Notes under the pieces: model-generated | What the model saw: the letters and a program-made list of their open reading frames with translations, nothing else | What the model was told of the DNA's origin: nothing | The model's database searches: none | Position numbers and translations under genes: made by a program | IMG/VR virus record: IMGVR_UViG_3300027770_000026 | Span: 62,001 to 126,000 of that record | Strand: one strand, 5' to 3' | DNA length: 64,000 bases | In this document: positions 6,122 to 61,929 of the stretch, one piece after another | Position numbering within the stretch: the stretch's first letter is position 1 | How the letters are laid out: each line of letters opens with the position of its first letter

Positions 6122-6170
6122 GGTACTGTCCTTATCTTAACGCCTGCTTCATTGTTTATCCTATAGATAT

Positions 6171-6208
6171 GAGGGTTTTTCTGTTGCAGGGAAAACTCAC
6201 AAACCCCG
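6171..6208 (-). repeat. 38-nt copy of the tmRNA coding-piece 3' element (hairpin)
   Basis: 35/38 identical to 8682-8719. Confidence 0.9.
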
Positions 6209-6214
6209 TAATGC

Positions 6215-6451
6215 TTAGATCTTACCGTTAGAGATGAACTCGTTGAGGCGCGAAGCCTTAACAATTACATCTTCTTCAGTAAAGTACTGGGGGAACTCTG
6301 GGGTATCGGGCAATGCCTTTTGATTGTGCATTGCTGATTGAACCTGATTGTTCCAGTCTGTCTCAACAAATCCACGCTTGCTGTGGTATTCGTCGTTGAG
6401 CATGTCCTTTGCGAGCCGTACTAGCTCTAGTCTAATTTCAAATGGTGTCAT
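6215..6451 (-). CDS. conserved small myophage protein (PFEIRLEL family)
   Basis: MTPFEIRLELVRLAKDML...; AAGGAG SD preceded by a CA-rich tract and a GCAGGA/TCCTGC hairpin. Confidence 0.85.
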   Translation of the reverse strand: MTPFEIRLELVRLAKDMLNDEYHSKRGFVETDWNNQVQSAMHNQKALPDTPEFPQYFTEEDVIVKASRLNEFISNGKI

Positions 6452-6539
6452 CTTCGTCTCCTTGTGTGTATGTGTGTACGCAGGATCGTTCCTGCAATTG
6501 TATATAGCAGATAGTTGTACTATTCATATAAATATTGGT

Positions 6540-8681
6540 ATGAAAATACATGATATACTCACCGAAGCACAGCGTTTTGACTTCGACAAACACCGTGATA
6601 CTATTCTGCGTTTTGTGCAAAATACGCTGGCCGGCAAGCCCAATAACAGACAATTCAATCCCTTTTATGAACTGATTGTGGGTGGCGGGCAAGTGGGTGC
6701 CGCAAACAAATTGGGTATTGATCCCAAGATGGCAGCAACATGGAAACAGTACTTCCAAAGCAAGCCCTTCCTAGGTGGAGCCGGTGAACCTTGGAGTCAG
6801 GTTAACATTGGTGATCAGTACGCTAAGGCCACAGGCGATGACCGAACCCTGAACTTTTATGTTACTGTAAGCAAAGACAAGGACAATATAATGAAGTTCT
6901 TTAGGAACTATCACAGCCTTGCTAGCTACTTACAGCCCATAAGTCAACAGAACCAAACGCCTATCAAGTTTAAAACACACAGTATATTAGACAGCTTTAT
7001 TGGGCACAACGACAGTTTCAAGGTCTACTACTACGATCCTAAACTACGGAACCAAATAGTTGCTGCTGTTAAGAAATGGCTCAGTGACAGTGGTGTAAGC
7101 ACTGCTGCAAGATCACACGAACACGGCGTGGACGTAAAGAGTAATGGTGGTAGCTTTGGACAGTTACTAAGCAATCACGTATACGACGAGTTCACCAAAC
7201 TGATAAAAACAAACGGCGCTAAGGTTACTCCTGAACAGTACTTTGACTGGCTTAAGAAGAATCTCCCTGTGTTAATAGCACAGGTAAAGCCTAAGGAGCA
7301 AATGACAGAATCCTGGAGCAAGGGCTACAAGAAGAGCATTGATTGCTCAAATCCAAAAGGGTTTGGTATGAGAGCCAGCGAATTTATAACTGAAACACCA
7401 CTTGATCCTAGCACATCAAGTAAAATACTAGCTATGGCAACACGGCAAAAATACCAACTGCTGGGACAAGGCGCTGATGCTACTGTATTTGGTAGCTCTA
7501 CTCACCGTCCAAAAACGGTAGTTAAGATAACGTCGGGCGAACTATACACATCTGCAAAAAAAGCCAGCATAGGTTTCGACCACTTTTACGAGTTTTGCCA
7601 ACAGCACCCCGATAGCCCCTACCTGCCAAAGTTTGAGGAACGGGGATTCTTTGAAGTAAACAGGGAAAAGATTCCTTGGGTGCGTATGGAGCGTTTGAAC
7701 GAACATCCACAGGATTTGCATATCTATGCTGCTGTAGATACGCTAATAGAGGAATCATTTAAAAACGAATTTGCTGATTGGAAACTTGTGAAGTCTCTGC
7801 ATCCAAAATTGACCCTACAACAGCTGGGGATGCTTAAGAAATTTTACTCCATGCTCTCGGAACTAACAGACTACTTTTGGAAAAAAAGATCCAAATTGAA
7901 GTGGGATCTAGGAAAACGTAATATTATGTACCGTAGTAACGTTCCTGTTATCACAGATCCGTTCATGGCTAAAGAGCGAGAAGAATATGAAGAATCCTGG
8001 AGTAAGAGCTACAAGAAGAGCATTGATTGCTCAAATCCAAAAGGGTTTAGTCAACGTGCTCACTGTGCGGGACGCAAAGCACGACGTGCGGGCAAGAAGA
8101 CCAAAAGCGGTAGCGTAAGTGAAGAAGGAGAACTACTTTGGTCGTCAATGAATGAAGCTAGAGCCAATAGTGTGGAAGATTACAAGCCCACTGACCAACA
8201 ATTAGATGACCTAAAAAGCAAGTATCTTCCCAATTGGGAAATGTCAGATCATAAAATGTTACAGGCACGCTACATAGCCAAAGATCATCGACGTGCTGAA
8301 AAATTTATCAGGTTCATAAACCAAGTATCCGAACGTATGGATCACTTTGCCAAAGTAACTCAGGATGTATCCGAAGTCACTGTGGAAACAACTACCTTTG
8401 ATGTAAAAGGTCTGACTATTTTGGACTTCCAGTTGGCCTCGGCCATAGACAAATATGCAGAAAGAAATCAAATTGAACAGGCGAGGTCAGGCGGTAATTT
8501 TGAAATGTATGAAAACTTTGCAGATGGCGAGAAGCCTGGTCGCAAAGGACTAGCCAAACGTTCAGGTGTTGACTGTAAGCAAAGTGTGAGTAAATTGCGT
8601 AGTGTTGCTAAGAATAGCACAGGTGAAAAGCAGCGTATAGCACATTGGTGTGCCAATATGAAATCAGGGAAGAAAAAATAA
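6540..8681 (+). CDS. capsid-targeted polyprotein: HopA1-like domain, Ser/Thr kinase-like domain, pterin-carbinolamine-dehydratase-like domain and Cys/basic peptide modules
   Basis: TATAAATA at 6527-6534 then ATG 6540 (MKIHDILTE); kinase LGQGADATVF/VVKI/DLGKRNIM/TDP; PCD-like LPNW...MDHF...GLTILDFQLA; modules separated by xxE sites. Confidence 0.8.
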   Translation: MKIHDILTEAQRFDFDKHRDTILRFVQNTLAGKPNNRQFNPFYELIVGGGQVGAANKLGIDPKMAATWKQYFQSKPFLGGAGEPWSQVNIGDQYAKATGDDRTLNFYVTVSKDKDNIMKFFRNYHSLASYLQPISQQNQTPIKFKTHSILDSFIGHNDSFKVYYYDPKLRNQIVAAVKKWLSDSGVSTAARSHEHGVDVKSNGGSFGQLLSNHVYDEFTKLIKTNGAKVTPEQYFDWLKKNLPVLIAQVKPKEQMTESWSKGYKKSIDCSNPKGFGMRASEFITETPLDPSTSSKILAMATRQKYQLLGQGADATVFGSSTHRPKTVVKITSGELYTSAKKASIGFDHFYEFCQQHPDSPYLPKFEERGFFEVNREKIPWVRMERLNEHPQDLHIYAAVDTLIEESFKNEFADWKLVKSLHPKLTLQQLGMLKKFYSMLSELTDYFWKKRSKLKWDLGKRNIMYRSNVPVITDPFMAKEREEYEESWSKSYKKSIDCSNPKGFSQRAHCAGRKARRAGKKTKSGSVSEEGELLWSSMNEARANSVEDYKPTDQQLDDLKSKYLPNWEMSDHKMLQARYIAKDHRRAEKFIRFINQVSERMDHFAKVTQDVSEVTVETTTFDVKGLTILDFQLASAIDKYAERNQIEQARSGGNFEMYENFADGEKPGRKGLAKRSGVDCKQSVSKLRSVAKNSTGEKQRIAHWCANMKSGKKK
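7307..7364 (+). repeat. 58-bp direct repeat, copy 1
   Basis: 56/58 identical to 7991-8048; encodes ESWSKxYKKSIDCSNPKGF. Confidence 0.95.
7991..8048 (+). repeat. 58-bp direct repeat, copy 2
   Basis: 56/58 identical to 7307-7364. Confidence 0.95.
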
Positions 8682-8978
8682 GAGGGTTTTTCTGTTGCCA
8701 GGAAAACCCACAAACCCCGGTCTATTCCGCTATTAGGCGGCTAGTGCCATGTCGTAATTGCTATCGTTTGCAGTTACTGTTTTTGCGCTGATTAAGTCAG
8801 TCGCCTCACTGGTAGCCCTTAGTTTATTACTCACCCTGTCAAACCTGGTCGGCCCCAACAACAACACACTTCGTCCTGCAGTACATTCCTAATAGGTGTG
8901 ACACGGTCTGCAAATGTGCTGTTGGTGGAGCCGGGGGGAATCGCACCCCCGTCCAAGATGCCTTTAGTTAAGAGTTTA
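8682..8978 (-). ncRNA. ssrA: circularly permuted two-piece tmRNA
   Basis: Acceptor piece about 8978-8923 ends CGGCTCCACCA; self-pairing intervening segment 8922-8857; coding piece starts GGGGCCG at 8856 (G3.U70 pair); tag GCA(8771)..TAA(8733) = ANDSNYDMALAA; 3' CTG-GCAA-CAG hairpin; TATAAT at 8989-8984. Confidence 0.93.
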
Positions 8979-8996
8979 CTACCATTATACACTTAC

Positions 8997-9746
8997 TTAT
9001 AGTTTTTGATCATATGGTACTTCAATCCATCTACGATTATTCCACGTTGTATTGATAGTATGCACAACACCTTTCCTTATATCATGATAAAACAGTCTTG
9101 CTTGTGTTTGTGATGTGATGCTATCAACTAATGCCCAAAAACTGCTCGACACACAATGTATTTCTGTTGCGTTTCTGATCAGAGTAACCCACTTTAACAA
9201 GTTACCCTGATCTAGATCCAAAGTAACATAGATTATTTTGATATTAGGTAACCCGTTCACAACACGATATTGTTCAATGTCAATTGGAAAGCCATCTAGG
9301 TAATGACTGGATGATTTATGAATCAATACATATGGTTCTCCGGGGGTAACTAACGAACAGTACAGTTCATCCGAATCATCAATATGTTTTGGTAAACGAA
9401 AATTAGTATATCTCAAAGAGAAAGGCAAGTTATAAGAATCATAATATTGCTGAGAGAAATTAATTGGGATATGAATTCCGTTTATAACTGTGTAATTAAG
9501 CATCCTTCTCTTAATTTGAGAAAGTCCGCTATCTGATATGTATTGAGGTTCATAATTTGGGTGTACAGATACTACCTTAATATTAGGCCAATCTTGATAC
9601 AGACAACGAGTAGTTTCATAATAGCAAGGTTGAGTCGGAATATGTAATTCTCGACACCGATCGCCATAGTAATGAGCTATACCATTGTGAATAAAAGTAT
9701 CACCGAGGCTTTGATAACCTATAAAGAACAAACGATCAAATATCAC
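8997..9746 (-). CDS. glycosyltransferase-like protein, paralog 2
   Basis: SLGD..I.NG N-terminal motif and A.EIHCVSSSF C-terminal motif, GT-B (GT9/GT11-like) pattern; paralog of next gene. Confidence 0.6.
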   Translation of the reverse strand: MIFDRLFFIGYQSLGDTFIHNGIAHYYGDRCRELHIPTQPCYYETTRCLYQDWPNIKVVSVHPNYEPQYISDSGLSQIKRRMLNYTVINGIHIPINFSQQYYDSYNLPFSLRYTNFRLPKHIDDSDELYCSLVTPGEPYVLIHKSSSHYLDGFPIDIEQYRVVNGLPNIKIIYVTLDLDQGNLLKWVTLIRNATEIHCVSSSFWALVDSITSQTQARLFYHDIRKGVVHTINTTWNNRRWIEVPYDQKL

Positions 9747-61311: not shown

Positions 61312-61929
61312 ATGCGGGCAACAGAATTCATAACGGAATCACTTGATAAACCCTACCCATGGCGACAGGCAAGAGCCAAATACGCTATGGCAAAATATGT
61401 GTTCCGTGCCAACAGTATACTCAAACGCTATCAGATATCATTTGATGTACGAGGAGACAATCGTGTAGAAGTTGGTTTTGGTCGTTACACTCTGACGCGC
61501 GGTTTAGACCTGGGAAAGACCAAAGATAGTTATCAGGAGGCACAGAGAATCTTTGCTACAGTTGGTGCTGTCATAATGGATTTCCTCAAAAATAATCCCA
61601 GCGTGAACACTATTCATTTCAGTGCCCCTGCAGACAAAGGCGAGACTGAAAAAACATCCAGCAGAATACGACTGTATGGTGCACTAGCCAAACGCCTGCA
61701 ACAACAGTTGGCGTGGCCTAATATAACTCGAGAAGTAGAACCCAATCCTTATACCAATGATCCCGTAGTATATTGGGATATCAGTAAGGATGCCAAAAAG
61801 GTAGAGCCCACACAAGATAGAGATTATGCTGCAGCCCAAGCAGCCAAAAATCCTAACCCTATTTTGGATAAAATATATCCAATGAGAAAAGCTCAAGCAG
61901 TAGACCGAATACTGAGTAAAGGTCTATAA
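61312..61929 (+). CDS. capsid-tagged protein (possible GNAT-like fold)
   Basis: TAAATA 61302-61307 then MRATEFITE; IFATV...F.A...SR.RLY. Confidence 0.7.
   Translation: MRATEFITESLDKPYPWRQARAKYAMAKYVFRANSILKRYQISFDVRGDNRVEVGFGRYTLTRGLDLGKTKDSYQEAQRIFATVGAVIMDFLKNNPSVNTIHFSAPADKGETEKTSSRIRLYGALAKRLQQQLAWPNITREVEPNPYTNDPVVYWDISKDAKKVEPTQDRDYAAAQAAKNPNPILDKIYPMRKAQAVDRILSKGL

Follow-up and report, generated by a model that had tools for sequence, protein, structure and literature searches.

We analyzed a 64,000-nucleotide (nt) stretch of DNA (the window) from IMG/VR record IMGVR_UViG_3300027770_000026, an uncultured T4-like jumbo phage of 265,892 bp, of which the window covers bases 62001 to 126000. 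One of its genes, P0002, encodes a 713-amino-acid (aa) protein in which a kinase with its own ATG and short tag lies between two nearly identical in-frame repeats. From the N terminus, the protein consists of a tag, a domain that we call module A, a truncated basic module, a second tag, the kinase, a complete basic module with Cys and His residues (the Cys-His module), a domain like pterin-4a-carbinolamine dehydratase (PCD), and a basic C-terminal module (Table 1). With module A, the kinase, and the PCD-like domain, it contains at least two unrelated domains of effector type, as is expected of the polyvalent proteins of phages. On balance, we consider it likely, though by no means certain, that the gene encodes a polyvalent protein which is targeted to the capsid, processed by a protease, and injected, and which exchanges modules at junctions formed by tags and linkers, with the kinase as a young fusion. 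The gene lies within a longer open reading frame (ORF), 6348 to 8681, and we took the ATG at 6540 as its true start because the related proteins P0003 and P0005 begin with MKIHDILTE and MKIRDLLTE.

A kinase cassette between in-frame repeats

A repeat search of the window returned one family at this locus, two 61-nt copies identical at 58 positions (95%). They start 684 nt (228 codons) apart, are both in frame within one ORF, and share an exact core of 41 nt. Copy 1 reads ESWSKGYKKSIDCSNPKGF and then Gly, and leads directly into the ATG at 7368 and the tag MRASEFITE, while copy 2 reads ESWSKSYKKSIDCSNPKGF and continues as SQRAHCAGRKARRAGKKTKSGSVSE, which makes it a complete module. An earlier note made from the DNA letters had described direct repeats at this spacing, with a truncated peptide module in the first copy and a complete one in the second, and the comparison and translation agree with it on both points. 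A degenerate C-x-N-P-K-G-F pattern matched only the two repeat sites, with 0.00 matches expected from shuffled sequence.

Over their first 60 nt, the two copies are identical at 57 positions, compared with 44 to 49 of 60 between them and the orthologous modules of relatives whose module A is 82% identical. As the two copies are more alike than orthologous modules are, their likeness points to recent common descent or conversion, beyond selection on the peptide. Copy 1 is also the sole truncated module among the 84 distinct modules collected from homologous proteins and the 73 collected from IMG/VR loci. It ends after KGF, at codon 20, and abuts TTGGT-ATG; the same 5 nt precede the ATG at 6540, and the codons for PKGF supply an AAGGG stretch resembling a Shine-Dalgarno sequence before the ATG at 7368. 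With the module cut after KGF and placed against a start context that looks native, the left joint appears to be nonhomologous. This speaks against the earlier proposal that the kinase was captured through a shared peptide module, since such capture on both sides would have left two complete modules.

Relatives with and without the cassette

Module A was found in only eight other proteins. Three of these, P0003 (96% identity in module A), P0004, and P0005 (82%), are encoded at a syntenic locus behind the same small minus-strand gene, which in the window encodes 78 aa. In all three, module A is joined directly to a complete basic module, followed by an NTase, a small domain, or a ParB-like domain, and none has the kinase. 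A comparison of orthologues and a search for a junction lacking the 684 bp had been suggested as checks, and the second also gave a result. In sequencing run X3, from a different study, a 1,242-nt Logan contig (rec19) is 96.6% identical to the window over 6711 to 7323 and resumes at 8008, thus skipping exactly 684 nt in frame, with 41 nt that fit either side. The contig has other sequence in place of 8125 to 8511. The possibility that the architecture is ancient and fixed was rejected on the basis of the kinase-free syntenic relatives and this contig.

Neighboring junctions vary as well. Downstream of EG(K/E)LLWSSMNE, the PCD-like domain of the window replaces the next module of P0003. P0003 also has an NTase (residues 300 to 412) between VSE and EGKLLWSSMNE, which are contiguous in the window at 8124 to 8156, a second module indel. 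By these comparisons, phage proteins of this type gain and lose modules, with the NTase present or absent and the PCD replaced, much as the earlier note had supposed of the growth and shrinkage of such polyproteins.

Two further assemblies touch this locus. In run X4, from another metagenome, contig record 25 (838 nt) carries kinase-like sequence corresponding to 7479 to 7965 (in patches of at least 85% identity) and then module A from 6564; this contig is a third arrangement of the same two modules, with the kinase upstream of module A. The independent 69-kb assembly IMGVR_UViG_3300009161_000044 has a 100% identical module A and ends at window position 7321, 14 nt into copy 1. The assembly may have stopped there because the graph branches, either at the repeat or through the coexistence of forms with and without the cassette.

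The cassette encodes a protein-kinase-like domain

The cassette carries LGQGADATV as a Gly-rich loop, VVK, WDLGKRN (D-x4-N), and ITDPF. An exhaustive HMMER search with it retrieved 164 representative homologues, mostly free-standing proteins of 200 to 230 aa. Most of these align from residue 1 with the same kind of tag, such as MRATEFITE, MRASEFIIE, MKAQDFITE, and MRINEIITE, as expected if the ATG at 7368 and its tag are a retained gene start, as had been proposed. In an alignment of 46 sequences, the Gly-rich loop, K53 (the VIK lysine), E108, D180-x4-N185, and D197 (DPW/F) are conserved; K53 and D180 are kept in at least 90% of the homologues, and N185 and D197 are invariant.

The AlphaFold2 (AF2) model of the cassette has a pLDDT of 90 and a pTM of 0.86. 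Foldseek gave 318 PDB matches at E values up to 1e-3, and the top 50 of these were protein kinases, with PknB first, and APH(2'') phosphotransferases, with TM scores of 0.35 to 0.48. A PDB profile search gave weak matches to NleH1 and APH, and 12 of the 46 homologues matched the Pfam family Kinase-PolyVal (PF18762; best E value, 4.4e-5). By its motifs and predicted structure, the cassette is a minimal protein-kinase-like domain with a bilobal kinase fold and intact catalytic motifs, in agreement with its first description as a kinase. Phosphorylation of proteins is its predicted activity; APH-like small-molecule kinases are equally near in the modeled fold.

The phage encodes two paralogues of the kinase. 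P0271 (45100 to 45720, minus strand) is untagged and free-standing in a minus-strand operon. The other, at 205.7 to 206.3 kb of the genome, has a likely GTG start and begins (M)RVVEFITE. It is the second of two tagged genes that lie in tandem with overlapping frames (genome positions 205691 to 206738, minus strand). The first encodes a 135-aa HExxH metallopeptidase-like protein that starts with MRSREFITE and is similar to the N-terminal module of P0007. Two tagged genes arranged in this way could give rise to a fusion. The tag MRATEFITE, which the earlier note had pointed out at 61312, indeed opens a separate free-standing gene (61312 to 61929, plus strand); its 205-aa product is not a kinase and has a weak match to DUF6934 and to phrog_6387.

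The tags resemble the T4 capsid targeting sequence

The 9-residue tags, among them MRASEFITE, MRATEFITE, and MKIHDILTE, follow the pattern M-[KR]-x-x-[ED]-[FIL]-[ILV]-x-E. When all genome ORFs of 60 aa or more are considered, 11 of their 3,090 start-like codons fit this pattern, nearly all of them at the 5' ends of ORFs; a rough estimate puts the chance expectation at about 1. The tags resemble the T4 leader MKTYQEFIAE and share I/L-x-E at the end. Some module-bearing proteins start with MKTYQEFVAE or MKTFQEFITE, which are identical to the T4 capsid targeting sequence (CTS) at up to 9 of 10 positions.

In T4, the CTS MKTYQEFIAE routes internal proteins, or foreign proteins fused to it, into the prohead core, and the protease gp21 removes it (PMC8442874, PMC9026906). 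The T4 internal proteins are diverse, and the CTS is their only conserved part (PMC3012670). Residues 8 and 10 of the CTS set its processing (PMC9026906), and the T4 protein Alt is cleaved at ITE-6 and LTE-619 (PMC5694885).

The genome encodes the corresponding head proteins. Both a gp21-type prohead protease of the Peptidase_S77 family (PF03420; 90.6 bits; E value, 1.2e-26) and a Gp23 capsid protein (PF07068; 335 bits; E value, 4.8e-101) scored over the curated cutoffs, and the gene order of small protein, acidic protein, protease, scaffold, and major capsid protein (MCP) is that of a T4-like head. By analogy with T4, we infer that the tags are a local form of the CTS with the gp21-type cleavage motif ITE or LTE. 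This match to the CTS and the protease site had escaped the earlier note, as had the occurrence in T4-like phages of the stand-alone module described below. Just upstream of the genes for the acidic core protein and the protease, a 76-aa protein (genome positions 213537 to 213767, plus strand) starts with the tag-like MHLRDLMEN. It occupies the position of T4 gp67 and is likely a prohead core protein.

Basic modules share a junction rule

The short basic modules of P0002 recur in hundreds of multidomain phage proteins, whose further domains include NTase, GNAT, ParB, lysozyme, zeta-like kinase, and NT5C. The Cys-His module of P0002 (residues 486 to 529, SWSK…VSEE) has 12 Lys and Arg against 3 Asp and Glu, and the C-terminal module has 15 against 4. 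In all 70 distinct internal contexts of the Cys-His module, the residue before it (P1) is Glu, and in 67 of the 70, P3 is Ile, Leu, Val, Met, or Phe, against a background of 33%. The same junction pattern was seen in 29 of 32 cases of the C-terminal module, which is marked by NFADG, and the rule was replicated in an independent set of 73 IMG/VR modules. Since the hydrophobic-x-E is supplied by varied upstream parts, either tags or the ends of unrelated domains, it is a feature of the junction and lies outside the module.

The module was found in at least 593 IMG/VR loci. Many of these encode it alone, as a 51-aa tagged protein, MKTFKQFQE-SWSNKYKKSIDCSNPKGFSQKAHC..., and the same protein is present in cultured T4-like cyanophages, including Bellamy, S-SM2, P-TIM68, and S-CAM9, always annotated as hypothetical. 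In S-SM2, its gene lies between two terminase genes. Of our searches of 50,697 cultured phage records, only the one with this 51-aa protein reached cultured cyanophages; megablast with the P0002 locus and tblastn with the whole protein gave zero matches. Records with the module that are at least 90% complete encode both Peptidase_S77 and Gp23 (3 of 3), as does one fragment. Another fused protein keeps an internal MKKTFKQFRE before the module and has thus retained a start and tag much as P0002 has, while some module-bearing proteins start with MSWSKK and have no tag. Searches of the literature with motif strings and by topic found no description of the Cys-His and NFADG modules.

A model for processing and fusion

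According to the reading that we favor, the tags would direct the 713-aa protein into the prohead core. There, the gp21-type prohead protease would cleave at every [ILVMF]-x-E next to a module, on the C-terminal side of the Glu, the putative cuts being MTE/S, ITE/T, (Y)EE/S, VSE/E, and MYE/N (the slash marks the cut). Release would thus be in trans and would set free, within the head, module A, the kinase, the PCD-like domain, and very basic peptides, which would be injected together with the DNA. As free-standing genes of this kind already begin with a tag and a cleavage site, a head-to-tail in-frame fusion would cost little, as the protease would separate the parts again.

The kinase fusion would have joined a tagged stand-alone kinase gene, with its ATG and a 5-nt leader, behind codon 20 of a basic module. 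This may have happened by an insertion that duplicated the first 61 nt of the module or by a deletion that fused two neighboring tagged genes. The joining would have left the two 95%-identical copies of these 61 nt. The data fit both, so that neither the direction nor the mechanism of the event follows from them. Recombination between the copies would then remove 684 bp without disturbing the frame and recreate the junction found in X3 and P0003. By analogy, such a loss is plausible, since T4-type recombination uses patches shorter than 50 bp and the copies share a 41-nt exact core; in T4-type phages, recombination on homology below 50 bp and minicircles from repeat-flanked cassettes have been described (PMC2839356).

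Several observations weigh against this reading. The motif [ILVMF]-x-E is short, with 16 such triplets in the 713-aa protein, most of them within domains, and the junction before copy 2 has Tyr at P3. Packaging, cleavage, injection, and late expression are predictions by analogy with T4. The late-promoter consensus upstream of the gene, TATAAATA, is not enriched in the genome, and its 5-nt spacing to the ATG would mean a putative leaderless mRNA. The kinase cassette itself had no Pfam match at E values up to 0.1. The searches brought up no close donor, and even the best matches among free-standing proteins are only 36 to 37% identical; a word-index search with the kinase alone gave no match, and scans of viral_contigs and metagenome_contigs returned only the window's own record. 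All runs were compared as assembled Logan contigs, in which linkage across the 41-nt core and heterogeneity in the source population do not show directly. Finally, the X3 contig diverges from the window at 9 of 118 nt (7.6%) in the right-hand module and at 21 of 613 nt (3.4%) in module A; therefore, gene fusion fits at least as well as insertion. Of the earlier suggestion that a free-standing gene was recently captured, the free-standing origin is thus backed by the tagged stand-alone homologues and the kinase-free relatives, while capture as such lacks a close donor and competes with deletion-fusion, which fits equally.

The same products could also have been formed without any insertion, which we regard as possible but rather doubtful. 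Two neighboring tagged genes, one with module A, a basic module, and further parts and the other with tag, kinase, basic module, PCD-like domain, and C-terminal module, would have been fused by a single deletion that began at codon 20 of the module in the first gene and stopped 3 nt short of the ATG of the second, and the repeats would be paralogous modules kept alike by recent duplication or conversion. The native-like start context beside the truncated module would then be explained, tandem tagged genes are present in the same genome, and the greater divergence of the right-hand module from its X3 relative and the downstream PCD-like domain, unlike the modules of P0003, P0004, and P0005, are in line with such a fusion. 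It needs, however, an extra recent duplication or conversion, as the 95% nucleotide identity of the copies exceeds that of orthologous modules, and the X3 contig rejoins the window at 8008 to 8125 right after 7323, as if that half of the module had stayed put. A misassembly that joined the kinase at the 41-nt core is very improbable. The Logan unitigs of the source run, X1, do break at both copies, which is expected from the exact core, and the independent 69-kb contig ends within copy 1. On the other hand, the 703-nt unitig with the cassette is bounded by the repeat on both sides, which allows it to lie only between the copies or in a circle; the cassette and its flanks have equal depths (20.2 for the first flank, 19.5 for the cassette, and 16.5 for the second flank); the variants specific to each copy stand consistently on either side of the core; both joints preserve the reading frame; and the same record sequence is present in two collections.

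It is also conceivable, but unlikely, that neither the tag nor the modules are connected with capsid targeting or the prohead protease. The uncleaved protein would then act in the infected cell, where the tag would serve in translation initiation or regulation and the Cys-His module would be a structural or nucleic-acid-binding knuckle. The motif is short, and this alternative would readily accommodate both the MSWSKK proteins and the untagged kinase paralogue P0271 in its minus-strand operon. The near identity of some tags to the experimentally defined T4 CTS argues otherwise, as do the status of ITE and LTE as proven gp21 sites and the supply of hydrophobic-x-E by many unrelated upstream modules. 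The consistent company of Peptidase_S77 and Gp23 in the nearly complete module-bearing records and the place of the S-SM2 gene between terminase genes point the same way.

Relation to known systems

The closest parallel to the proposed packaging is given by the T4 proteins IPI, IPII, IPIII, and Alt. As in the phage studied here, there are a T4-type MCP, a gp21-type protease, and a leader of about 10 aa ending in I/L-x-E, and diverse cargo shares only the tag; the small modules here are very basic, and the injected protein Alt is an enzyme with cleavage sites at ITE and LTE. The T4 internal proteins are, however, single small proteins, whereas P0002 combines enzymes and basic modules in one ORF and keeps tags and sites internally. 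Its tag has 9 residues, compared with 10 in T4, and its packaging and cleavage are predicted.

Polyvalent proteins, described from phages and conjugative elements, each combine many unrelated effector domains; their packaging and injection have been predicted, and recombinational exchange of cassettes has been proposed for them (PMC5512222). They include a truncated Ser/Thr/Tyr kinase without the C-terminal subdomain, which also occurs as a stand-alone protein (Iyer, Burroughs, Anand, de Souza, Aravind 2017, PMC5512222). Members of the kinase family described here match Pfam Kinase-PolyVal, and the relatives' multidomain range adds NTase, GNAT, ParB, lysozyme, zeta-like kinase, and NT5C. In that description, release would be by embedded peptidases, and T4-like phages, the CTS, and prohead protease sites are absent from it (PMC5512222). 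Pfam and PHROGs searches found no peptidase domain in the 713-aa protein.

Short repeats also flank cassettes in the shuffling of T4-type genomes by PeSL elements (Arbiol et al. 2010, PMC2839356). There, too, one close relative has the cassette and another a single chimeric repeat, and excision as a minicircle by phage recombination is plausible. PeSLs are intergenic promoter and stem-loop motifs that move whole genes, whereas the repeats here are coding and in frame within an ORF, with one copy truncated. The hyperplastic internal protein loci of T4-type phages (Repoila et al. 1994, as cited in PMC2839356) offer a comparison case for modular shuffling. The T4 CTS and gp21 sites, polyvalent proteins with a truncated kinase, and repeat-mediated shuffling in T4-type phages are thus already known. 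Motif-string and topic searches of the literature did not find their combination: CTS-tagged genes strung into polyproteins, tags as internal junctions, a Cys-His miniprotein as spacer, and a young in-frame fusion with a cassette-free counterpart.

A structural lead for module A

Module A had no Pfam match, and a PDB sequence-profile search with it was empty. Its AF2 model has a pLDDT of 69. The model gave a TM score of 0.58 to the HopA1 cluster in the Atlas and a Foldseek match to LxmY with a probability of 0.95 and an E value of 0.018, with no match at E values up to 1e-3. VIA-align Z scores of 7 to 8 are within noise, as they are shared with ribosomal uL16 and designed proteins. Invariant motifs rich in Lys, His, and Arg (KFKTHS, GHNDS, and RSHEHGVD) were noted in module A. 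A phospho-lyase fold of the HopA1/LxmY/RamC_N type is possible for module A, as a lead from modeling on which the three weak searches converge.

Lyase domains of this type work with a kinase in lanthipeptide dehydratases. In the class III to V enzymes (LanKY; LxmK-LxmY), a kinase is combined with a HopA1-like lyase; in P0002, a small kinase stands beside module A, whose predicted fold bears a weak resemblance to LxmY, HopA1, and RamC_N. The P0002 case differs in that module A is paired with other modules and no kinase in its relatives, and no peptide substrate or cyclase is encoded nearby. Since module A did not co-occur with a kinase in the other homologous proteins retrieved, we do not claim coupling of kinase and lyase. 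At its most far-reaching, which we hold to be improbable, the tag and cleavage-site boundaries would form a protein-level cassette system in which any tagged gene could be fused or excised in frame with its function kept, and the newest fusion would pair the kinase with a HopA1/LxmY-like lyase as an injected two-step protein dehydratase, acting by phosphorylation and beta-elimination and irreversibly disabling a host protein.

Other features of the locus

Table 1. Features of the polyvalent protein gene in the window (window coordinates)
Feature	Position	Strand	Basis or remark
T4 late-promoter consensus TATAAATA	6527..6534	+	Ends 5 nt before ATG 6540; weak evidence
Polyvalent protein gene P0002, 713 aa	6540..8681	+	Start from orthologues; synteny with relatives
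N-terminal tag MKIHDILTE, CTS-like, ends in LTE	6540..6566	+	Sequence; precedent of LTE in T4 Alt (PMC5694885)
Module A, conserved anchor of the locus	6567..7307	+	62-96% identity to P0003-P0009
Repeat copy 1, truncated basic Cys-His module ESWSKGYKKSIDCSNPKGF-G, after MTE	7307..7367	+	Repeat comparison
Internal ATG and tag MRASEFITE	7368..7394	+	TTGGT upstream, as at 6540
Kinase cassette, 208 aa, with G-loop, VVK, D-x4-N, DPF	7368..7991	+	Homologues, motifs, AF2, Foldseek
Repeat copy 2, 5' part of complete module	7991..8051	+	Repeat comparison
Complete basic Cys-His module ESWSKSYKKSIDCSNPKGFSQRAHCAGRKARRAGKKTKSGSVSE	7992..8123	+	Residues 486-529, SWSK…VSEE
EGELLWSSMNE junction element	8124..8156	+	P0003 has an NTase between VSE and the element
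Pterin-4a-carbinolamine dehydratase (PCD/DCoH)-like domain	8190..8453	+	Pfam PF01329, E value 2.7e-16
C-terminal basic module NFADGEKPGRKGL...HWCANMKSGKKK, after MYE	8514..8678	+	Sequence; junction statistics

The gene lies on the strand opposite to the neighboring nucleotide-metabolism and replication genes, and PHROGs gave nothing bearing on the kinase finding for the polyvalent protein or its neighbors. The sequence TATAAATA occurs 13 times in the genome, 11 of them facing an ORF, where a rough composition estimate predicts about 20 by chance, and we dropped it as a genome-wide late promoter for want of enrichment. It stands exactly 5 nt before the ATG also at the tagged gene MRIHELTE (genome position 54444, minus strand) and at a third gene (119244, minus strand). 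By analogy, T4 late-promoter geometry would place the transcript start on the A of the ATG or directly beside it, giving leaderless mRNAs.

A transfer-messenger RNA (tmRNA) gene at 8659 to 9038 on the minus strand converges on the polyvalent gene (Rfam beta_tmRNA, 124.5 bits and E value of 1.4e-38; tmRNA_permuted, 142 bits at 8733 to 8983). ARAGORN predicts ANDSNYDMALAA as its tag peptide, and the match to the beta-type model is a hint that the host may be a freshwater betaproteobacterium. The small minus-strand gene and the entire polyvalent gene are bracketed by a direct repeat of 42 nt (6167 to 6208 and 8678 to 8719; 90% identity between the copies). This repeat carries a GGGTTTT...AAAACCC hairpin; copy 2 is the terminator-like hairpin at the 3' end of the tmRNA, and copy 1 follows the small minus-strand gene and has a weak alpha_tmRNA match (E value, 0.019). 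The repeat may act in shuffling in the manner of a PeSL, or it may mark the edge of an old insertion. Insertion into the tmRNA gene was considered as an explanation of the repeat and set aside.

Implications

Knowledge of the T4 CTS comes from a handful of coliphage proteins, and the sequence serves as a tool in engineering. Our results suggest that environmental T4-like phages use a CTS-type tag on a large and fast-changing pool of enzymes. They further suggest that tag and cleavage site double as a neutral in-frame junction, which would explain how injected proteins with several effectors are assembled and taken apart. The repeat-flanked kinase and its natural relative without exactly these 684 bp form a rare before-and-after pair. 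The reading proposed here would give names and a predicted location to many proteins now annotated as hypothetical.

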